This document shows positions 5,529-37,152 of a stretch of 64,000 nt of DNA, piece after piece; position 1 is the first letter of the stretch; each line of letters begins with the position of its first letter. Under the pieces are notes generated by a model that searched no databases, had not been told where the DNA came from, and saw only the letters and a program-made list of their open reading frames with translations. Origin of the DNA: Zygnema circumcarinatum SAG 698-1b (taxonomy: Eukaryota > Plantae > Zygnematophyceae); NCBI GenBank assembly GCA_037447605.1, contig CM074811.1:1550001-1614000 (forward strand), read 5' to 3'. The translations under genes and the position numbers were made by a program.

Positions 5529-8500
5529 TCATTGGCCTGCTATCTCGTTGTCATCAGACTTCGCCACCGATTCCTCTTTCTTCTCTAATCTCGCTGAAGC
5601 GTAGTCCATCAAAACGCTTTCTTTTTGTTGGGGATCTGCAGAGACTTCCTCCTTTCCATCTGCAAGCTCCTCTGACGGCTCGGATGCTTGTTCTGAAGGC
5701 ACCTTCTCATTTGCGCCAGTCACTTGTGAATCCATATCTTCCTGGTTCTGTTTACCAATCCGTATAATGCTGGGCCCACCAATTCTCAATTTCAATAGCT
5801 CACTCCTCCATGCCAAGATTAGTCTCCCTTTTTTGTCTATCGCCTCATAGAAGGTTTGCCCTCCCTTCTTTGTGGGAAAGGGTACCTTTGCATCCGGAGG
5901 TGCTTCGAGGGAGCCGATGTAAACCAGGCAAAGTCCGTTACCCAGCTGCATCTTCTTCCATTTCCCTCTAGTTGCAATGACGAGGCCTTGTCCAACTAGT
6001 TCTCCATCCGCGTCCAACACCTCCACTTCATCTTCTCTTCTTAGCCTATTTCCTCTGTCCGCATGTTCTGACTTAGATGACCCTTTGGCGCTTGTTGCAC
6101 TTTCCCGAAACCTGCTCCTGCCCTTGCCTTCTCCGTTTGAACCCTCTTCATGCTCCACGTCTTCACACTCCATCCCTGCCTTAACCTTCCCAGTACCCTC
6201 CTCTGCCTTCCCTTCCAGGTCATCGTCATCCTCCTCCTCGGACTCATCTTCCTTATCTTCACTTTCGTCCTCCTGTCCTTCACCTCCACTTTGCTCCTCG
6301 CCTCCCCCTTCACCCTCCAACGAATCCTCCTCACCAGAGTCATGGTTACCATTCTCATCCTTGTCCTTTTCATCCCCTACTTGCTGCTCCTTCCTTATTT
6401 CTCCTGCCTTCTTCACAAACCCTTTTCCTTCTATGCCATCCAGCTCTCCTTCACCTTCTTCCTCCTCGAGGTCCCCATCCTCCTCTCGGCCACCTCCATC
6501 AACTTCATCCTCACCCTCTACCTCTTCCTCCGATTCCTCACTGTCTCCTTCTTCTGCCCCATCACCATCAAACTGTCGCTGGTCCAAATGCTTCAATACG
6601 CTGTCCTCGTCTCTCCCACTCTCGTTTCCTGCTGCATCCAGTTGTCCCTCAGGTCCACTTTGCACAATCCCGGCCCTCACTCTCTCCCCAGGAGGTACCT
6701 TCCTTTTCTTCTTTCTGAGACTTGCGTCGGCTCCTGCAGTCTCCTCTCCCTTTTCTGGTGTAGTCCTTGGCCTCCTTCGTTTGGCAGGAAGTACGGGAGG
6801 AGCCAATACAGTCTCTCGTCGAACCGCTCTACTAGCTACTGGCCTCCGGCCTCTGTGCTTGTGATTGTTGATCCTGAACAGATACCGAATCGAGAGAAAC
6901 ATTTAAAACGGCACAAGGTTCTGTAGAAACATACAACTAGAGTGCATACGGGACAAATCGTGTTGACAAACTAGGACAGCCCTGCCTCACAGACACAAGG
7001 ATTTATGTCTTAAAACACCTCGTCCAAAACATTCATTGAAAGCTTGTGTTCTTCGGATGGGTGCCTACAAACTTGTGTGCTTTTTCACATGATCAAAACA
7101 GCAAGATACAGATAACACGAGGACAGAGAAAACGAACCAAACACTGTATCTGAGAGTGTCATGGAACAGTCCAAACTATGGGACAAAAAACAAAAAATAA
7201 TCATCAGCATTAATGCCCCAAAAAGACCTCACCGAGGGAACACCAGTCGGGTCATATCAACGGACTAACTCTAAAAGAGCCAGGAATCAAGTTCCTTACC
7301 AGTTTTTCAGTTGAGTGATCGATATTCTTGATCCCTGCATAAGCATGAGCCATAATCAGCTGCATCAGGAGAAGAATAATCTCCTCCCAACAGGCCATTG
7401 ACATGCACAACAACAGCATAAGAAAGGGGACTACTGAACACCCTTCGATCCTAGCAGAAGCATTGTAGTAAAGCTTGGAAAGGCATGCAACTAGTTCTGC
7501 CATGCACAATTGATGGAGTCCTTACCTGGACCATGTCATTAAGCACATTCACCCACTGCTGCAGAAGTTCTGGAAACCGATGCATGTCGGGTTCCTCCCT
7601 GAGGGCCTCTTCCATGGCATCCGCTTGATCTTCAGTCATAATCCTCCGTCTGGCAACCCGTACCTTATCGTCGATTCCAGGCAGAGGACCTTGTTTTGAC
7701 ATTTTACTTGGCACTTCCTGTGCATCGTCCCTTGCTACCTCGTCGTCGCCTTCCCCTCTCTTTCTTCTTCCAACACTCTTCAGTCTTGCTTCGCCTTCCT
7801 CCGCATCACTCACCTCCACTCCATCCCCGATATCATCCTCTACCCCCTTTCCACTAATACTATCAAGAGCCTTCACTTTCCCTCGAGAACGAACCCTGTC
7901 AACAACCCTCTTCTGAGCTCGCTTACCGCTTGTCCATTTTCGCCGAACCTTTTTCCTTGGGCGATTTCCCCAGCCGTGTGTTCCCCCAGAAGGAACCTCC
8001 CGTTTCACCTTTTTCAGTTTCCTTTCCATTGTCTCATCCTCCTCATCCGTCATCCCTCTCTTTTGACTCCCACCAGACTCACCATCATCCTCTCCTTGTT
8101 TCCCTTCACTCTCGCTCTCGCTCCCTTTTCCATCATCCCTCTCGTAAAGCTGAAGGGTCTGTTCTTTCGGTAATTTCTTCATCCTCGTCTTCTGGCGTGA
8201 TCGGATATTACCCTCACCTTCTACATCCGATGCACCTTGTTGTTCTCCTGACTGTTCCACGCTCTGAAGGTCATCCTTACTCTGCCTTTCTATAAGAGTT
8301 CCTCCTGTCATTTCTTTACCCAGAATTTTCTGTTCCACAGACTTTTTACGAGCTTCTGAGACAGGTTTGCCCAATTTGATGCTTTTTCCACCTTGGTTGC
8401 GTGTAGCCTTGCCACTTCTATAATCTTCTCCCTTGAGCTTCTTATTCCCAGTTTGTTTCAAGGAAGTAGACTTCATATGCTCTTGAGAAGCTCCTTTCCT

Positions 8501-11500
8501 GGACCTCCTCGGCCAACTCCCACCCCTCACACGTTCCCAGGAAGAACCCTTTCCTCCTTCCACACCATTCTCATCTCTGGATTTGCCCATCCCCATGAAC
8601 CCTGCCTTTCTCGAATGAAGTCCTTCATCCTGCGGTTGGCGCCTTCCAAAACCCCTTGCCGGAGAGCCACCAACCTCATTGGCTTCTTTACCATTCATCC
8701 GTCTGCTTGCCCCCGGGCCCCCCTCCTGCTTGAACTCGCCCTCTGCAAAAGTTGCCATAAGGCGCTGCCAGCGAGGCTGCTGCTCCCTGCGGGACTGCCA
8801 CTGATGGAGGTTCTGCTCATGCGCATCAAGGATGGAGGCCTCTTGAGAGTGGTCCTGGAGTCAACAAGACCAGCAGTTTGTCAAATCAGCATTTTTCTAC
8901 ACAGCAGAGGAGGTATTTATGAAAAACGAAACTAGATGTAAAAGAAGTGGGTCCATCGGTGCAAACTTTGAATCTTTTGTCAAGGTGGCGTCAGCTCCTT
9001 TCTGACCAGCCTACTTGGAAATTTTACAACCATTTCTCTAAATTCATTGTATTTTAGAACCGGCCGCACAACCTCCATAACTGTGATTCTATAAAAGGAC
9101 GGTGATTACGTGGAGAAACTGTCACTTTCAATACTCCTTTGTCAGAAAGTAATGCGTAGCCACTAGGGAGAGCGTTAACTCGAAAGTAAACAAAAAAATG
9201 GTCTCTCCGAATCACACACTGTCATTCACAATCCCCTGATGCATGTTGACTACACATTTAATGCGGCTAATTGACATATACTACATGAAGTTAACTTAGA
9301 ATCCGGTTGTCTTCAAAAGCACTCGACAAAAAAGAGCGTTGAGCCTCACAGTCGTTGACGAGCAAGAGTCTTTCAATCCGCTGTGGGAACAGATCGCGCC
9401 ATGAAGTGCTTCAGAAAAACGGCTGCAAGACCATGTCCCGTTCACATGGTCACCTCAAGGAATGACAAACTTAACCTAGCTACTAATGCTTTGACGAACT
9501 CTATCATTAAAAAGGTGAACACAATTGCCATAAAATCTGCCATTGACCCCACAACGAAGAGGTGTACTTCCACGTGGAAATGCAGCAATCACTGAGAATT
9601 GCGTGACCTTAGCACCCTCTCCCTTCCAGGACTGCTCAATTCAAAAGGTACTCAACGTCCAACTTTGCTTTCCGCAGCTTTGCTCATCAGTGGCCCGCTA
9701 AGGCATGTTAAAAATATAAGTCTGAGGCAAAGAGGGGATGACGAGAGCATCATGAAGCACCTGACAAGGTAAATATCGTCGTTAGCAACCTTATCCTCCG
9801 GAAGAGACATCACGAACTCCACTAACAGATCTGCACAGCATGCATCCTTCGATTTCGTCAAACAAACCGATCTAACTAATTTTTGCTGACTTGTTTGACG
9901 AAAGTGGTAATAGTAAGTATTGTGGGATGTGGACTGTCCAGTGTTCAAAAGCTGGTATATCCTCTGTGTAATACTTCAAAGCTGCGACAAATTAGCTCAG
10001 ACTACGAGTTGGTTACATGAACAGGTACTCGTCGTTGCAAAATGAAGACTCGGTTCGGCAGGAAAAAGCATTGAGCCAAAGCATACAGAAAACTGAGGGC
10101 AGGACAAGAGTGTGATGCTGAAGAAAGGAACCATATAACCTTTCATCCGAACTGCTTGTATGACACTTCAAGTACTTTCAGGACAATTTCAGATGCAACA
10201 ACTTACAAAGGTTCTCACAGATGCGGACTGCAGTGCGTGCTCGAGACTGGATAAAGCATTGATGATCGGGCAGCAGCGGGCCAACTTTAAGACAATCGAT
10301 GAAGTTTTTCAAAAACTGGTCCCTCGTCTCTGTTTCCACACCAAGTTCAAGCTAAATGAAACGCAAACTAATCGAGTACGAACTGAAACAATGAAGGACC
10401 CACTCATGCGGCAAATTACCTTGTTTTTTTTAAATTGGGAAGGGAAAAACCACAAACCTTCAGCTGTCCTTCGACAGGAATGATTACACTAAAACACATA
10501 AGGAGCACTTCCTACACAAGTATCGAGAAAAATCCTCTGCATGATTCAGGAGCGAACACTTTGTAACAAAGGCTATTTTTCATCCACCTGTTTGCAAGAA
10601 CTACATCAAAGCTGGGACTGAAGAGAAATGGATTAACTTACCTGATGTTACGTAGGGATTATAACAAAGAAGGTTTCCAAACAAATGCACCAGCAGGGAA
10701 GCCATCTCATGCACATGAGCCTCCTCTGCCATCTTTTCCGGCTTCAAATGCACTGGCGCTTCCGCATCATCTGCTCCGGGTACTTTGTTAATCAAATCCA
10801 AAACCGATATCTTCACCTCCTGATCGTCTCCCGCCTTCTTCACTTCGTCGTGAAACTCTTCCCATTTCTCCTTCAGTTGGAACACAGCACCCAATGCATG
10901 AAAAGGTCTATACACAACAAATGCATCGGCCTCTTTTCTCGCCCGCCCTCGAGCCACTTCGCCTCCTAACCAGTGCGAGACAAACTCTGCAGGGGGAGCT
11001 GCGAGCATCTCAGCCAAGCACGGGGTCTGCAAGAGGAAACAAGGGCAAGTCAGCTGCATACAAGGAAGGTTGACAAGGAATGGTCAACAGAAAAGTTTTA
11101 AGCCAGCTAATATGTACTCACTACTGCCTGGACCTTGTTAAGACTTCAAAATTCCAGATTCCACGAGTTCGGAGCTCGCATCATGTCTAGACAAACGAGT
11201 CAAAACGGTGTGGATAAACAAGATCCAAGCGGTAGTAAGCCAGCCGAGAAAGTCTTCTACAAAGACACAAACCCTTAGTGTACATACATCGGTGCATGCA
11301 AACCCTCGGTACACACAGCGTCGCATTTGAGGAATTTAAAAATATTGAAGATGCACTGTTAACTTCCATTGACCGGTTTCTGACATGTTGCTTTGAATAA
11401 GCAACATGTCAGCTGAAAGCTGTTAATAAAGACATTCCTCACATCACATGTGCATGTAATAACTTTCTTATCAGAAAGAGAGCTATTCCTTATACTTCCT

Positions 11501-28791: not shown

Positions 28792-31662
28792 ATGGCCGGG
28801 CACGGGTACGGACATGGCGGCATACATAGGGCCATGCGACACTGCATGCCTGCGCCTGTTGCAGAGAAGAGCTTGCATTCTGCGGCAGCCATGGCGGCAG
28901 CTCCCGCCCTTGCGCCTTGCAGCGCCAGGCTCGTCTGTCAATACAGCTGCAACGTTGCAGGATCGAGCTGCAGGCCCGCCTGCCAGGCACGGAAAGGAGA
29001 TGCTGAGGAGTATCAGCGTCGGAAGAGGTCCGGGCGGAAGGTACGCGAGGCCTCTCGCGGGACGTATTCGAATGATGCGGGAGTGAGGCAGTCCTGCAGG
29101 CAGCCTCCATGGACAGGCATCCATTTGCAGCATGTGAACGTTCGGCAGAAGCCGCAGCCGCCTATTGTATGGCAGAGAGACCGCGGAAAGTTTGCGAAAA
29201 CTCGGAGGGGGCGTGGCCCTGCTACTCCGAGAATGAGGAGAAAGGAGGCGGCTCTTGCTGCAAGAGCGGCTGCTTGGGGTCTGACTGTAAGCACAGATTG
29301 CTGTTGAGGGTTTTGGGATTGATCTTCAAAATAGATTTTTCTTTTTTTCGTCTATTTCCCTTTTAATGAATTTTTAGTTAGTTCGGCTGACTGTGGCAAG
29401 AACATGACGATCGCTACCTTCACTTTAGGATTAAAGGTGTGCTTTTTTTCTTTGGATTGTTTCTGAATCACTGTAGGTTTCTCCTTTCCACGCCGACATG
29501 AGCTCTCGGGATGGACCGGAGCACAGTGAAGTGAATCTGCACATTGTTCAAGTTGCGGAGGATGAGAAGATGGAAAGAAATTCGAGGAGAGCGAGAGGCC
29601 TCATACTTCTGAACCTTCTTGCAGCTCTGAATGGCACAAGTGCCGTTGCCACAAAGTTCATTGACGATGAAGCTCTTGATGTTTCGCCCAGCCTTATATC
29701 TCTTGTTCGCTTTCTATCAGCAGGTATTAACAGAGGTGGTGATGTGGCTTCTCACATGTGGAAATTCAATGTATATACCAAGCTCAAACAATTTACCTGT
29801 TTTCCGTTTTGAACATTCTAAACATGATTCCTTGCTGTGTGCATGAATTACTTGTCTTTGCATGAACAGATCCAAAGCTGTAGTCCTCTGCAGTTAACAG
29901 GATCACTGATTCTGCTAGTCGTGCCTATGCAGCCATTTTTTTCTGCCCTGCCTTGCCGACGGCTTTGTCTCGGAGAGATCCTTCTTTGGTGAAAGCAGGC
30001 GTGGAGCTCGGCCTGTGGAACTTTCTCGGGGTTTTGGCTATGGCGTCCGCCTCACCAGGCAGTTCTGATAGCAATGCCCCATTGCTGTTTGCATTTTCTG
30101 TAAGTAATCTCTTCCTATGCAGTGCCAGTCACATACAGCTTGCAAGTGATGGATCTGCAGCTTTGTAAAACCCTTTGAACTGTCACGTTGTCCATGTCTT
30201 GGCAGAGTCTCGGCAAGTTGCTGCCAGCACTGTGATTTCACTGATTATTAAAGGCAGTCAACCTTGCGTTTTTCTTTGTCGGTGTTTGGATTGACTTGAT
30301 TCGACAATTTTCGATTCGATTGTGTCCTCTCGAGGCTACCTCAGTTATTTGACGTCATCAGATGCCTGCAGGCTTAAATTTGCGCTGTTGGGTTTGACAG
30401 AAACTTTCTGTCTACCTTTTGTGCAGGTCCTCTTTCTACCCGGCCTGGAATTTTTCGCCGGACAACGTATGAACAAATCCTCGTGGCTCGCAACCATAAC
30501 AGCACTTGCCGGTATGTTTTCACAGTTAGTTAGCCTGATTTTCTGTGATCTTTTGTATGGATCAGCCAATAAAGAGGTGAGAACTCACGTGCTAACTCCA
30601 ACAGCCGTATTCGCGTATGCAGGCATGGGCGTACTTGAGGAGGAAAACCAAAACTGGCAAGGCTTTTCCATCCCACAATTGTCGGACTTCCGAGGAATAG
30701 TGGCTGCGTTCGCTTCTGCTGTTCACGTTTGGAGATCTGAAGCGCTGGGAAAAAAGTTTGACGCCTATCAGTTGACCGCGGTCCAGATGGGAACACTCGC
30801 GCTGCTTGGATGTGGATGGGAGATGCTTTCTGTCGGACTTTCCAAAGAAGGGCCAGAAGATATATTGCAGCAACTCCAGTTGCTTCCCTGGGCTCCTTTA
30901 CTTTATGGAGGTCTGATCTGTTCCGGCCTCTGCAATTGGTTAGAGCTGAAGGGGCTCCATGCAGTTCCTGCGTCAACGGCACTGTTTGTATATACAACTA
31001 TTCCACTCTGGGGGGGCTTTTCTTCGTTTCTCGTTCGCGGGGAGATTCCTGCTCTGTCGGTGGCACCCGGTGCTGCAGCCATCCTTTTCACTGTGTTCCG
31101 GGCACAGGCTTCCTTCATGGAAAGGGTGGAGACGCCAAGCCATGGCCATCCTGAGGGCCTCAGCAGGCAAAACGAATCCTCCTCTTCTTTCAATGAAGAA
31201 CGTCTCAAAGCAGTGGAGGCACAAACCGCAGCTACAAGCAACCTCCAAGCGGCGTTTCTCACCTCGCAACTGAAGTTTCCATTTTACAGCATGCAAGCAA
31301 AGCGTCTGTTGGCTGAAGTTAAAGTGAAGATCAGCATAGCGAAGGCATCTCTTGTTTCTTTGCAGATCTCGGTGGCAAGCTGGGCTGACCATTGGCACAG
31401 TGCTCATAGCAGCCTTCAGATTCCAGGCATCCCAAGTGGCGGATCTTCAACGATGCCAGATGCGCTAGGCCGCCTGTTTGCTACAACTGCTGACACCCTC
31501 TCTGCTGGAATCTTAGCTGCCACGCAGCTATCACAAATGGTTGAGATTTTGCCGGCAGGACTGGTCGCTGCTCTGGGATGTACAGCTGAGATTTTTAAAG
31601 TCACTGTGACAGCTATCGCGGTAGCAGCAAGCACCACATCGGGATCTGATGCCTCGGACTAG
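28792..31662 (+). CDS. EamA/DMT-family membrane transporter, probably plastid-targeted, with C-terminal extension
   Basis: Basic Ala/Ser/Arg-rich first exon (start 28792 or the MAAAPA ATG near 28890), then GLILLNLLAALNGTSAVATK..SLVRFLSA, KAGVELGLWNFLG, VLFLPGLEFFAGQ..WLATITALAGMGVLE and LTAVQMG..LPWAPLLYGGLICSGLCNWLELKGLHAVPASTALFVYTTIPLWGGFSSFLVRGE. The pattern fits two EamA repeats. Confidence 0.85.
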
Positions 31663-32219: not shown

Positions 32220-33110
32220 TCAACCTGCAGGCCCTGCGAGGGCACAGTAGTGCATAAACGCTTGTGAAGCTTTCTATTCTTCATTTTTATTGAATTGTAA
32301 GCTGCGTGTGGATTACTGGACGTAAAGTTTCTTTCGACCAGAAAGCTTATTTACTCATGGGCTGTGTGGTTTTCGTGAGTTCCGGAACATTGTGGGATAT
32401 GAATCTGCTACCTTTGGCACTCAACTTTGCTTCCGTCTTCTGTGCCATGTCGATGCGACAACTCTTGCAGCCTGTGGGCAAAAAGGCAAAAACAAAGGCG
32501 AAAGGACCAAGGCAAGACCAGCCAAAGCGAAAGAACGAGCAAGAGTTTTTTTGTGATGTGGCCCCAGAGCTCACTCTGTCTGCGAGCGTTAGACACGTCT
32601 GCTTTGGATGCCTTTTGCACCAAAAAAATCGCAGGTAACATCTGGTCCTCGCGGGTAGAGTCGTAGCCTTCACCCACATCCTGCAAGACCAATTTGTTAC
32701 GAGGCCAATGCTACAAGACCTGTCGCAAAGCCACCTTCCAAGCGAGGCTGAAGCCTTTGCCGATTCACTCCAAGGCAAAAGAAAATCATGGATGACATAA
32801 AATCTGTATTGCTGCATGAGCGTCTTGCCAGTCTTCGTGTGTTGTGTTGTTACTCCTCCCCTCGTTCTTTCCCCCATGCAATCTCTTTCTTCTCTCCCTC
32901 GCCCTTCTTCCTTCCTTTTCCCCCATGGCGCTCTCTCGAATTTGCGAAGCCCAATTCACATGCAGGCGCAAAGCCCTTCTGTTACCCTATCGAAATTGCG
33001 AACCTCAAGAAGCAAAAGAGCGTGGCAGGGAGGCAATATGGTATGCGGGCGCAGCAGAGGTAGCGGCAGACAGCCATGGCGGGCGGTAGAGAGCGCGACC
33101 TGGAGCGCAT
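32220..33110 (-). CDS. Putative small spliced ORF (67 aa), unidentified
   Basis: Candidate exons 33110-33100, 33003-32986, 32803-32735, 32680-32640, 32471-32412 and 32224-32220 join by GT-AG into MRSRFAISIGFYVIHDFLLPWSESAKASASLGRMWVKATTLPARTRCCKSCRIDMAQKTEAKLSAKG*. No family recognised, and alternative frames exist. Confidence 0.25.
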
Positions 33111-33623
33111 CAGCTGGCACGAGGCCCTGCGCGTGCTGCTCCGCGCGCTGGCCCGCCTCCTGCCTCGCCGGGGCCCGCTCGCCTGACTGCGCTGCAGCAG
33201 CAGCTGGAGGACCGCCTCGCCTTTGAAACCGCAGAAGGGGTTGCCGCGCCATCGTCAGGATTGGCCAAAAATGAGGCGGCAAAGAAGAGGCTGAGCCGCT
33301 CAAGTCGTAGGAGCCTTTGGCAGGTCGTGTGTACTGAAAGGCAGGCACTTCAGTTCTGCAAATATGCAGTCGGAGTACAGCATGAGGTGGTGCTAGAAAT
33401 ATAGAAAATAGCAGCACGCAGGCACTCATGCCCTCCTGAAGTTCGAAGAAGATTTCTTCTGCGGAACTTGGCGTCTCAGGATGTCGTCAGTCTCTCTTTC
33501 CGCAACGCGTTTTACCTCGCAGGCTGGTATGTTTGGATTAAATCAACCATTGCCGCCTGGAAAATTTGACCACATTCCATTCTTCTGCATGCCACAGTCT
33601 GACGGTAGAACAGTTTCGCTAAT

Positions 33624-35874
33624 ATGTATGCGCGTTCTGCTGGGTGGAATTATGCTGCTCTGGTCACAGCAAATACAAGCGTTCTGTGGCAATCGTCCTC
33701 AGCTTATATTTCAACATCAGTCTCTCGAGGTCATCGTTCATTAACTCAATGCAAAATGCGAGCAAAGTCTGAACATGACATCATTTTTCCCAGCATCATG
33801 GAGGACATTCCAAGCACTGTTGCGGGATTCAGCACCAGACATTTTGGAAACTTGAGCATGAGCCAAGAAGGGGCACCTCTGTGTGAAAATTTTTGGAGAC
33901 TAGAGAAGAGAGTAGGTGGTGAAGGCTACTCCTGGGCACTTCCCAATATGGAGCATGGCACGAACGTAGCGTAAGTCACCATTTGTGGTTTTCAGGCCCG
34001 CTTTACCACAGTAGTTGACGGTGTATGGAATGAGTGTCTGTTTGGGACGCAGAGCATGAAACTTACCTTTTGAAACCACATTAAGTAGTTCACATGAAGG
34101 ATTTTGATTTGTCCCGGATGATACTTAGCTGAATCACTTTACTTTTGAAGGATACCACTCTATCTTGCACAAGAAAGCGAAAAATTAAACGCGTCTAAAG
34201 AGAAATAGCACGGACTTCCCCTTTGCGAGACATGTTGGAAATCATCTTGTGTCCGTTAGGGTCTGTGTGGGAGGTAATCCTCTACTGCATATTTGGAATC
34301 TGAATCGCTTTTCCAGCTGTTTCGTTTGTTGAAGGGTATATGCTGGCAGCTGAACAAGTGAAGTAGGCCAAAACAAAGCGGTCAGGGCAGGAAAATGCTG
34401 CTATGGGGTTGGTCTGACATTGGTGCCTGCCGTTTGCAGAGTGGTTCATTCAGGCGGCCGTGTGCCGAATTGTGACGGGCTCGTCACTAGCGCTGAACGG
34501 CTTTTCATTTGCGTCACAGGTAGCTGATATAACTACATATGAGATTTTCGGTTGTGCCGGTTTGAATCTGGCAGAGAGCAGCTTTTCATGAAGTGTATGA
34601 GGTATTTGAGAGCTTCCTTGTTGGGATACTGGAAGGCGTGTAATTTACCTGGAAGTTTGTTATGCCGCGTTATGCTGTGCATGCAGCTGCAGACTGTGGA
34701 TCTGTGTTGCTGGCGGACCCGCTTACAGGAGTAATCGGTAAGAGAGTGAGATTCAGTTAGGGCCGCCATGTGCAGTCGTTACGAGAGCCATGTGCTGCCG
34801 ACCTGCTATATATAGCTCTACAGGGTGTGAAGTGTTTCCGTTTGCATGAGTTTAGTGGCTCAGTTATCATAAGATGTCATTTCGGCCGCACCAGTAGTTG
34901 TGCAGTTCGATTGCTATGCATTCATCCTTTTCATCAAATGGGTACTTAGAGACAAGTCTAGTCTGGCCATGGGCCATGGGTATTATCGGTTTTGTGAAGG
35001 AAGTGTACGTGCGCACAGACTGAGATTCGCAGCTCGTCTGCATCCTTCCTGATGATGCTGCGCAGGTGTGTGCCACTGCGGATGGAGAGGAACGGCAGCG
35101 GGCATTGTTGCTGCCACGGTGCAGACTATGAGGTGAGTCCCCTGCTGAGGCGGATGCTGTGCGGGACATTGGTAGCTCTCTGCCTGTGCGGATTACAAAC
35201 CCAATGCTTTAACGGCACAGGTCTTCTGTGCTTGTGCAGAAGGGAGGGGGCGCATGTACAGTCAATGAGGGCGTTCGTGGGGCCATGCATCAGTGTGGAC
35301 AGTTTTGAGGTAGGCACTCGCGTTTCTACGGCTGAGGCTGCGAGCTGCTGCAGGAGTTGCGTGAAGGTTGGATTACTTCTTCGTCTCTGGTGGAGGTGAT
35401 TCAGCGTTGCTGCTTGTGCAGGTGGGAGAGGAGGTGGCTGCCATGTTTGACCCCGAGTTCGTGGTGCGGAAGAGCAGTTGGAGGCGGCCCCATGTCGATC
35501 TGAAGGTGGGGTTGGGTTCGCTCTCCTTTTGATCAAGTTTTCTGAAACATTAGCCTTCTTGTATCGCTTCGTGTGGCGCCAATTACGTCAAGTCCATCAC
35601 CCTTGCTTTGCTTTGAATGTGTCATTGCATCTGCCAAGGAAACGACCTTCTGTCGAAGAGGAGATTGCTCCGACCCCTTGACGTGATGGATACTGAGGAT
35701 GCACAAGGGACTGGGTTTGTGCAGGCTGCCATTCAGCAGCAGCTGGCGGAGGAGGGCGTTGGCGCAGTGGAAGTCCACCCCTCCTGCACGCTGCTTGACT
35801 CCGCCCACCTGTTCTCCCACAGGGGGAGTCAGGGCTCTCCCGAGCGCCACATGGCCTTTATAGCGCTCCGCTGA
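33624..35874 (+). CDS. YfiH/PgeF/LACC1(FAMIN)-family protein (purine nucleoside phosphorylase / peptidoglycan editing factor fold)
   Basis: Seven exons (~33624-33970, 34440-34519, 34687-34737, 35066-35132, 35240-35309, 35422-35505, 35725-35874) join in frame: AGFSTRHFGNLS..MEHGTNVAVVH..CDGLVTS..VTAADCGSVLLADPLTGVIGVCHCGWRGTAAGIVAATVQTM..FVGPCISVDSFEVGEEVAAMF..HVDLKAAIQQQLAEEGV..CTLLDSAHLFSHRG..RHMAFIALR*. The 5' end is uncertain. Confidence 0.9.
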
Positions 35875-37152
35875 CCTTGTCTACTGGCACGCATGGCGTC
35901 TCGCTTCCCCAAGAAGGAAATTGGCTCGCCTTCGTGTGAGAGATGATGCGGGTGGCTGCTCTTCAGAAGCAAAACCAACCTTGCATTCGGCCGTTTGTAG
36001 CGGCTGTTTGTAGCTACGCAGCTAGAGAGCCACCCCTTCAAATAAGTAGTCGTTCATTCACCTTGTATACATATTCTTTCTAAAAAAGAAAACCCATATA
36101 ATCATTGCCGCATGCATGACATATGAGTGATGGGTTTCTCGCCTGTTGAAACACGTTGTGCCGTTCTCTCGTTCTCGTTGAAGTGAGCGAAGGACACGGC
36201 TGAGAATTGCAGACCTTCCATGAGGCCTTCCGTCTGTACGGCCAGCGTTACCGTTCGACCCAATACTGTACGGGCATAGCACCGTTTGAAACCTCGACCG
36301 TACGATTCGTACAGCTTGACTGCCTTACATTTGGGGTTGCGTGGAATCCACGCGAGCACGGAACTGTCGTGCGTCACGGTAAGATACATCCTCGGCTTTG
36401 TGCGTGCATTGGTCTACGTGTACGGCACGTATCGGTGCTGCTCATGGCAATCGAATGACGCCACGTGCATAGATGGCGCCACAAGCGCCAAAAGTGCCTG
36501 CTTTCGGCAGTGTACGAGATTTCCACGTGGCGGCAGGACAGCAAAATATGTACGGCCTTGGCGAGGTCAAAATTCAACTTTTTCGATTGTCGTTTGCGGA
36601 CCACCGTGACGGCGCGTGACGAGGAATCTTCTCTGACAAAAAAAGCAAAAAAAACTTCCAAACCTTTCCCTTTTTTTTTTAAATGTATATATATGTAATT
36701 TTTTAAGGGTGGTTCTTCCCGAGCCATCGACTATCGACCGCTACGAGAAATCTCGAAAAAAAAATTCTCAAGTCCCAAAAATCTGCCCGTCCTCGGACAG
36801 TCCCAGATTACCTGCCCAAAAAGCGGCGAACGTGGCCTAAAAAATTCTGCAACAGCCTGCTACGGTCCGGCGGGCAGCAGAAAAAAAAACTTCGGATTCC
36901 TCGGCGCGCAGTGCCGGCCGACATCGGCGGCATCGCTTCTCCCTCTCCTCGGCGCCGTCGAGAGCCTCTCTCGTCGAACGCCCCCCTCGCCGCCGCGTGG
37001 CGCCCACCTCCCGCCATGGCGACCGCAGCTCGCAGGATGGCGTACAAGGCCGCGCAGGGAAGCCATGGCAGGCAGGGCTCCCCCGCTCCACCCTGCGGGT
37101 GCCTCTCCCTGAACCCAAGACTACCTCCTTCTCAAAACCCTAAATTTGAGGG

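Follow-up and report, generated by a model that had tools for sequence, protein, structure and literature searches.

We find that a gene in a 64,000-nucleotide (nt) stretch of the genome of the zygnematophyte alga Zygnema circumcarinatum SAG 698-1b (GenBank assembly GCA_037447605.1, contig CM074811.1, forward-strand positions 1,550,001 to 1,614,000; the whole stretch is called "the window," and coordinates are counted from its first letter) is an intact, expressed, and intron-bearing member of the PgeF/YfiH family, whose Escherichia coli representative is a peptidoglycan editing enzyme. Its coding region, 33481-35874 on the plus strand, comprises eight coding exons and specifies a 282-residue product. 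We regard the identity of the gene and its horizontal origin from bacteria as very probable. The best explanation for the data as a whole is that the product is a Rhodothermota-derived, plastid-imported, and less selective amidase of bonds between N-acetylmuramic acid (MurNAc) and aminoacyl groups, a fuller account that we offer tentatively and to which we give slightly less than even credence. Published work restricts the PgeF/LACC1 family to bacteria and to vertebrates or metazoans and states that plants lack it (PMC12280929, PMC6978800), and a literature search found no report linking PF02578/DUF152 with streptophyte algae. A preliminary description of the locus, made from the DNA letters without database searches, had proposed a seven-exon gene for an overlooked plastid peptidoglycan editing factor; the results below keep the family assignment and change much of the rest.

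Structure and expression of the gene

Ten public RNA runs carry the matching species label and seven of them cover the stretch; contigs of four runs, from four studies, were aligned to 32900-36700. In transcript contigs of all four runs the six introns of the preliminary model are spliced out, each with GT..AG ends, and so is a further intron at 33527-33669 (143 nt; donor GTATGT, acceptor CACAG). The start codon of that model (ATG 33624) and its first 15 codons (MYARSAGWNYAALVT) lie inside this further intron and are not part of the coding sequence. The RNA, the GT-AG borders, and an open frame confirm the model from the end of its first exon (33970) onward, including all six 3' exons; its start is not confirmed, and the coding exons number eight rather than seven. 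The first in-frame ATG is at 33481, downstream of an in-frame stop at 33409, and the frame is open via the upstream exon, giving a corrected N terminus of MSSVSLSATRFTSQA, followed by the ANTSVLWQ... of the earlier model. A true start farther downstream, which would remove the presequence, had been named as an objection in the preliminary description; the true start instead lies upstream, and a presequence-like leader remains. The contig of one run ends at 36098 and continues with eight untemplated A, marking a poly(A) site. Because introns are removed and an untemplated A tail follows 36098, the runs are RNA-derived and the gene is expressed and spliced. The parts of the gene and the evidence for each are as follows, where ORF stands for open reading frame, uORF for upstream ORF, and UTR for untranslated region.

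32606-32634 (+): 3' end of an upstream noncoding exon; 25 loose letters opening one contig are an exact match to 32606-32630, and the join fits a GT..AG intron at 32635-32965.
32966-33526 (+): leader exon, with the uORF and the first 46 coding bases; contigs of three runs begin at 32949, 32935, and 32962, reach 33525/6, and join 33669/70 (donor GTATGT).
33076-33186 (+): conserved uORF of 36 codons; its peptide matches an ORF in the transcript of the orthologue described below (L002, 64-159).
33481-33526 (+): coding exon 1, start codon and first 15 presequence codons; first in-frame ATG after the stop at 33409, with MSSV.. resembling the MAGV.. of the orthologue.
33527-33669 (+): intron 1, which holds the ATG at 33624; spliced out in four runs.
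33670-33970 (+): coding exon 2, remainder of the presequence, start of the domain, Phe90, Met109 (33948-33950), and His111 (33954-33956); transcript joints and alignment.
34440-34519 (+): coding exon 3, Asp128 (E. coli Asp89); joint 33970 to 34440 in four runs.
34687-34737 (+): coding exon 4, Asp145 and the nucleophile Cys146 (34695-34697, assigned by alignment); joints in four runs.
35066-35132 (+): coding exon 5, HCGWRG motif with His163 (35074-35076), Trp166, and Arg167; joints, and PF02578 at E=1.8e-5 from the exon alone.
35240-35309 (+): coding exon 6; GT-AG borders and transcript joints.
35422-35505 (+): coding exon 7, RPHVDLK, a motif in common with Rubricoccaceae proteins; transcript joints and alignment.
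35725-35874 (+): coding exon 8 and stop, His265, Arg266, and Arg274 (E. coli Tyr227, Arg228, and Arg235); PF02578 at E=2e-6 and TIGR00726 at E=8.9e-7 from the exon alone.
35875-36098 (+): 3' UTR to the poly(A) site; contig of one run with eight untemplated A.

Minor splice forms also occur. One contig of one run leaves out the 51-nt exon 34687-34737 in frame, losing Asp145-Cys146; two runs use an alternative acceptor at 34454, 14 nt downstream of that of the exon at 34440, which causes a frameshift; and one run has a cryptic donor at ~34274, within intron 2.

Elsewhere the contig carries genes for an EamA transporter, a GT2 synthase, and a protein of the NDX (nodulin homeobox) type. The plant NDX domains Nodulin_C (E=9.6e-13) and HTH_NDX (E=1.5e-7) are found in a pair of long ORFs at window positions 5529-8755 on the minus strand, and these domain matches point to a plant-lineage nuclear origin of the contig.

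Catalytic residues and substrate pocket

Profile and structure searches were run with single window exons or with the orthologue (P0001), and the whole window protein was compared by local alignment. Single exons match Pfam PF02578 (Cu-oxidase_4, DUF152; the YfiH/PgeF/LACC1 domain) in colinear order, at profile positions 113-132 (E=1.8e-5) and 191-237 (E=2e-6), with a weak exon match below the Pfam cut-off at positions 137-157 (E=0.13). The orthologue matches the same profile with E=1.4e-50, and the spliced window protein aligns to bacterial PgeF with a blastp E of ~1e-65. Exon 2 alone has no match in Pfam, NCBIfam, or PDB sequences; in its N-terminal third the domain has diverged too far to be recognized from one exon. 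(Exon pieces aligned on an E. coli YfiH scaffold gave a poor alignment, which was not used for searches.) Against the NCBIfam PgeF equivalog TIGR00726, with its cut-off of 141.15 bits, the orthologue scores 136.6 bits, just below the cut-off, compared with 148.5 for Rubrivirga and 276.5 for E. coli.

The AlphaFold (AF2) model of the orthologue, the core of which is mostly at a predicted local distance difference test (pLDDT) score >85, has the alpha/beta/alpha fold of YfiH: its top 18 Foldseek matches in the PDB are all YfiH/YlmD/PgeF proteins (E 1e-18 to 1e-22, TMt 0.71-0.80) and include E. coli YfiH-C107A with UDP-MurNAc-L-Ser. The catalytic triad proposed in the preliminary description is intact, window His111, Cys146, and His163 being equivalent to His136, Cys171, and His188 of the orthologue and to His71, Cys107, and His124 of E. 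coli. Editing by the E. coli enzyme requires His71, Asp89, Asp106, Cys107, and His124, the loss of each of which abolishes it (PMC12280929), and all five are kept in the window protein (His111, Asp128, Asp145, Cys146, and His163); the Asp89 and Asp106 columns are invariant in 196 bacterial homologues. E. coli YfiH further contacts UDP-MurNAc through Trp127, Arg128, Tyr227, and Arg228, and binds the aminoacyl carboxylate through Arg235 (PMC8844914). Four of these contacts are kept in the window protein (Trp166, Arg167, Arg266, and Arg274), and Tyr227 is replaced by His265, as it is by His in 28 of the 196 bacterial homologues. More broadly, among the 34 columns with ≥90% conservation across 197 bacterial sequences, both algal proteins keep the residue in 28. 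Judged by alignment and by the modeled fold of the orthologue, the mature protein is predicted to be a PgeF/YfiH-fold cysteine amidase, with Cys146 as nucleophile together with His163 and Asp128.

The residues that face the variable part of the substrate tell a different story. Gln69 of E. coli YfiH hydrogen-bonds the hydroxyl of L-Ser and has been termed the specificity determinant for L-Ser over L-Ala (PMC8844914). Of 196 bacterial homologues, 194 have Gln at this position, whereas the two algal proteins have Met (Met109 in the window protein, Met134 in the orthologue). The same exchange has been made in E. coli: Q69M lowers activity on UDP-MurNAc-L-Ser from 274,084 to 12,489 nmol/min/mg, a ~22-fold drop, and on the L-Ala substrate from 23,451 to 10,353 nmol/min/mg, so that the twelve-fold preference for Ser is lost (PMC8844914 Table 1). 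Two further positions have changed in both algal proteins. The near-invariant Arg of the "NR" motif (E. coli Arg51) is Phe (Phe90, 33891-33893), where the equivalent Arg59 of YlmD hydrogen-bonds hypoxanthine in an inosine complex (PMC6978800), and Gly234, adjoining the carboxylate-binding Arg235, is acidic (Glu or Asp; window Glu273, 35850-35852). The remodeling of the pocket at the Gln69, Arg51, and Gly234 positions looks coordinated and, since both algae share the changes, they are older than the split of the two. As read from the alignments, the catalytic and UDP/MurNAc-holding residues are preserved, and where the variable part of the substrate is bound the pocket appears more hydrophobic. 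The preliminary description had implied an unchanged editing role, which does not sit with the loss of the selectivity residue: because Gln69 is Met in both algae and E. coli Q69M loses its preference, a Ser-selective editing role is doubtful.

Set beside the characterized enzymes, the algal protein resembles E. coli PgeF/YfiH (PDB 7F3V, 7W1G, 1Z9T) in fold (orthologue model, TMt ~0.8), in the five essential residues, and in most UDP-MurNAc contacts; the E. coli enzyme is cytoplasmic and selective for UDP-MurNAc-L-Ser/Gly, and the algal protein differs from it by a presequence and by the replacements Gln69 to Met, Arg51 to Phe, and Tyr227 to His. Geobacillus stearothermophilus YlmD (PDB 6T0Y, 6T1B, 1T8H) likewise shares family and fold, and its triad His80-Cys125-His142 has algal equivalents, whereas its purine-binding Arg59 is Phe in the algal proteins and the region of its gatekeeper His47 is shortened in them.

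Relatives and origin

When 1.84 billion cluster representatives were searched with HMMER, using the 71 domain-start residues of exon 2, a single cluster of true relatives was retrieved, that of the orthologue. Nine other matches were rejected as long repetitive proteins that match in several short stretches. The orthologue is a 310-residue protein from another organism, seen only on ~1.9-kb transcript contigs of runs SRR8128902-07, and is 61% identical to the window protein over its full length. The ratio of nonsynonymous to synonymous substitution rates (dN/dS) between the two is ~0.08 in the domain and 0.32 in the extension (extension dN 1.1), with dS saturated and the values therefore rough; such a contrast is expected when a targeting peptide that evolves rapidly precedes a conserved enzyme.

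A word-index search with the orthologue returned ~100 bacterial proteins of 222-257 residues ahead of all else (E 1e-55 to 1e-44), and the matches with names are all called PgeF or "polyphenol oxidase family" and come from Rubrivirga, Rubricoccus, Rubricoccaceae, or Bacteroidota bins. No land-plant protein is found among its 120 best matches. The window protein itself is 45-49% identical to Rubricoccaceae PgeF over residues ~50-282, compared with 28% to E. coli YfiH. In a bacterial scan of one genome per species, the matches listed are Rubrivirga (46% and 43%), Salinivenus, Balneolaceae, Saprospiraceae, and Chitinophagales, followed at ~32-35% by Alphaproteobacteria and others. Cyanobacteria are absent from the best 80 genome matches, from the named protein matches, and from the matches listed in a plasmid collection. 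A word search with exon 2 alone gave zero candidates, an exact look-up of the exon-level ORF matched no contig, and a protein atlas held generic bacterial PF02578 clusters only. The searched collections lack the window protein itself, which makes this survey of eukaryotes a thin one.

Phylogenetic analysis places the algal genes in the same neighborhood, grouping the pair with Rhodothermota-type PgeF at an ultrafast bootstrap of 97-100%. In a tree of 97 rows (IQ-TREE, LG+C20 PMSF), built without cyanobacterial or LACC1 sequences, the algal pair (100/100) joins a Rubricoccaceae clade (97/86) within a Rhodothermota-type clade (99/86), which in turn joins Balneolota and Chitinophagales rows (100/85). 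A topology with the algae outside the 18 bacterial Rhodothermota-type rows is not rejected by the approximately unbiased (AU) test (p=0.49). The algal pair is accordingly placed within or as sister to Rhodothermota-type PgeF, and the nested and sister positions are not separable on this alignment. Because trees group the algal pair with Rubricoccaceae, we infer horizontal transfer, which the preliminary description had offered as one of two routes; nearest relatives and tree neighbors alike are Rubricoccaceae/Rhodothermota. The other route, endosymbiotic, fares badly: the ranking of hits and the supported tree grouping make the case against a cyanobacterial origin, with Rhodothermota as nearest relatives and no cyanobacterium among the best matches (the tree itself holds no cyanobacterial sequence).

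Rubricoccaceae PgeF proteins from Rubrivirga and Rubricoccus (e.g., P0011; loci L007 and L008) have in common with the algal proteins the motifs AADC, FEVGEEVA, and WPRPHVDLK, a short domain, and all catalytic residues. They differ in being 224-232 residues long without an extension or introns, in having ~70% guanine-plus-cytosine (GC) content, and in keeping Gln69; they also lack ~20 residues around SLNLG/NR that the algal proteins partly retain. The GC content of the window gene is 0.55 and that of the orthologue's coding sequence 0.47 (algal range 0.44-0.55), compared with 0.68-0.70 for Rubrivirga. In Rubrivirga (L007, 3153-4687) pgeF directly follows the shikimate dehydrogenase gene aroE, with overlapping ORFs, and is not in a cell-division cluster; a metagenomic protein of 506 residues (P0020) is called as an AroE-PgeF fusion.

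Vertebrate LACC1/FAMIN is a eukaryotic member of the DUF152 family, with Thr rather than Gln at the selectivity position (PMC8844914), in which DUF152 is the C-terminal part of a longer protein without editing activity (PMC12280929, PMC6978800). Compared with LACC1 as described there, the algal protein has only a 48-residue extension, disordered in the orthologue model, keeps Arg235, and groups with Rhodothermota. The label "LACC1-type" in the preliminary description is hence not borne out, there being no LACC1-like extra folded domain and all neighbors being bacterial (in a tree without a LACC1 sequence): the algal gene is a transfer independent of LACC1 and not its orthologue.

Localization, translational leader, and proposed function

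The N-terminal extension is ~48 residues long, bacterial homologues starting to align at residues ~49-53. It contains 38% Ser plus Thr and no Asp or Glu, with a net charge of +6 and a low amphipathic moment, so that the presequence-like character noted in the preliminary description (about 45 residues rich in Ser, Thr, and Ala, none acidic) holds for the corrected 48 residues, of which the first 15 are different ones. The extension of the orthologue is 72 residues long and likewise basic, acid-poor, and Ser/Thr-rich, with a similar start (MAGV.. compared with MSSV..), and is disordered in the AlphaFold model (pLDDT <50 for residues 1-66). From this composition the extension is likely to be an organelle import signal, and the plastid is, by a modest degree of confidence, the probable target organelle; many Ser and Thr, few Arg in the first 30 residues, and the low amphipathic moment make it likelier than the mitochondrion. 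A mitochondrial or dual location may nonetheless apply. An internal Met45 (33756-33758) lies near the start of the bacterial proteins, and the orthologue has a Met within two residues of that place; this Met may descend from the start codon of the donor gene or may begin a leaderless isoform.

Plastid peptidoglycan enzymes of streptophytes offer a parallel: moss MurE, with its 62-residue transit peptide, and its counterparts are likewise nuclear-encoded, bacterial-type, and N-terminally extended, and for plant MurE, too, an affinity outside the cyanobacteria has been described (PMC9434261). Those enzymes are widespread and their function has been tested, whereas the algal PgeF-type gene is found in two organisms and its function is predicted.

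Upstream of the main ATG lies a leader that is ~520 nt long or longer and contains several further AUGs. Transcript 5' ends vary: in one contig 32634 is joined to 32966, and others run unspliced through that region, from at least 32900. A 4.7-kb high-depth contig extends ~3.8 kb upstream toward the EamA-type gene (29498-31662), which suggests read-through or overlapping transcripts. The peptide of the 36-codon uORF and that of an ORF at the corresponding relative place in the orthologue are identical at 19 of 31 aligned residues, with a core of ...WHE..L.LLR.L.RLLPRR; the uORF region is the sole nucleotide similarity between the two leaders (68% over 100 nt), and the start (Kozak) context, CAGCCATGGC, is identical in both genes. 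This conservation suggests a candidate conserved-peptide uORF and points to possible translational control; alternatively, the ORF may encode a small cotranscribed protein. An Rfam scan of the window gave no match.

These results can be assembled into the following scenario. A bacterium of or near the Rhodothermota, and Rubricoccaceae-like, would have passed the gene to the nucleus of a streptophyte alga, where it would since have acquired a 48-residue presequence upstream of the old bacterial start, a long uORF-containing leader, and eight or more spliceosomal introns. The presequence would import the enzyme into the plastid stroma, where the enzyme would act on peptidoglycan precursors or turnover products, cutting the amide bond that links the lactyl group of MurNAc to their first amino acid. 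With Met at the Gln69 position and Phe at the Arg51 position, the pocket would discriminate little between Ser and Ala; because the Gln-to-Met change lowers the expected discrimination, a flux brake or recycling amidase fits better than a proofreader. The setting makes a plastid role in peptidoglycan metabolism plausible for a protein of this sequence: the MurA-G, MraY, PBP (penicillin-binding protein), and DDL toolkit is reported in zygnematophytes, and in Closterium the division of chloroplasts is sensitive to antibiotics against peptidoglycan synthesis (PMC13519894); moss contains detectable UDP-MurNAc-Ala (PMC9434261); and E. coli YfiH also cleaves free MurNAc-L-Ser (PMC8844914). A MurNAc-linked amide is a possible substrate on this evidence, though we stop short of calling it the probable one. 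The most specific form of the proposal, in which a natural Q69M amidase acts as a brake or recycling step of zygnematophyte plastid peptidoglycan, without discriminating against L-Ala and with uORF-gated translation, is unlikely to be right in every part.

Several of the results given above weigh against the scenario. The replacements at the Gln69 and Arg51 positions depart from nearly all bacterial homologues, and the orthologue falls just short of the PgeF equivalog cut-off; the location may be mitochondrial or dual, and Met45 may give a leaderless form; the tree holds no cyanobacterial or LACC1 rows, and the AU test does not reject a position outside the Rhodothermota-type rows. Moreover, the detectable eukaryotic members are two, so co-distribution with the peptidoglycan pathway cannot be shown.

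The strongest competitor to a plastid MurNAc amidase is a cysteine amidase repurposed for an amide outside peptidoglycan, such as another N-acyl amino acid or a hydrophobic conjugate, which may be mitochondrial. The hydrophobic replacement of near-invariant pocket residues in both algae (Gln69 to Met, Arg51 to Phe), with an acidic residue for Gly234, the narrow distribution, and a presequence type that composition does not settle would all suit such an enzyme, but the equivalents of the UDP/MurNAc-holding Trp127, Arg128, and Arg228 and of the carboxylate-binding Arg235 are retained, and the host lineage is reported still to make plastid peptidoglycan (PMC13519894). We consider this alternative somewhat unlikely. 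Less probable again, and distinctly unlikely, is a purine-nucleoside enzyme in the manner of FAMIN/LACC1 and YlmD/YfiH (phosphorylase, deaminase, or methylthioadenosine (MTA) phosphorylase), serving purine salvage in an organelle or the cytosol rather than peptidoglycan. The family has measured nucleoside activities (PMC6978800), and the Gln69-to-Met change means that the transferred enzyme did not simply keep its editing pocket; yet the weak phosphorylase activity of E. coli PgeF and LACC1 is independent of the triad and both Asp (PMC12280929), whereas in the two algae the triad, both Asp, and the Arg residues binding the UDP diphosphate and the carboxylate are under strong purifying selection, and the Arg that bonds hypoxanthine (YlmD Arg59) is Phe.

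The interpretation closest to the preliminary description, an ancestral Ser/Gly-selective plastid editing factor inherited from the cyanobacterial endosymbiont and common to mosses and other peptidoglycan-retaining plants, is very improbable. It can draw on the intact catalytic residues, the presequence-like extension, and the peptidoglycan genes reported in streptophyte algae and bryophytes (PMC13519894, PMC9434261), but the closest relatives are Rhodothermota rather than cyanobacteria, the selectivity residue is changed, and published surveys have the family absent from plants (PMC12280929, PMC6978800). Nor does the gene appear to be a general, overlooked component of green-plant plastids, since an exhaustive search yields one other eukaryotic cluster and the 120 best matches hold no land-plant protein; for origin and breadth this interpretation is already largely refuted. 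The possibility that the gene is a bacterial contaminant or the dead remnant of a transfer, which the high similarity to one bacterial family might have suggested, is ruled out for practical purposes by seven coding-region GT-AG introns and at least one leader intron removed in RNA from four studies, a poly(A) tail, plant-type genes on the same contig (NDX homeobox, EamA, and GT2 synthase), the gene's eukaryote-like composition, and purifying selection (dN/dS ~0.08) relative to an orthologue of another organism.

The weight of the finding is limited by its narrow distribution, in two organisms, and by a function and location that are predicted from sequence. Within those bounds, the gene adds to a known family a new eukaryotic branch with a transfer of its own, distinguished by its presequence, its altered selectivity residue, and its uORF. 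It records a clean, datable transfer from a bacterium to a streptophyte, followed by the gain of introns, presequence, and uORF, and it is a counterexample to the statement that the family is absent from plants, in the algal lineage closest to land plants, one in which peptidoglycan is still made around the chloroplast. It also gives the plastid-peptidoglycan field a concrete, testable candidate, in which an M109Q exchange would be comparable with the published E. coli Q69M data. If the brake or recycling interpretation is true, the chloroplast wall would have its first dedicated regulator or salvage enzyme, and the plant lineage its first member of the family.

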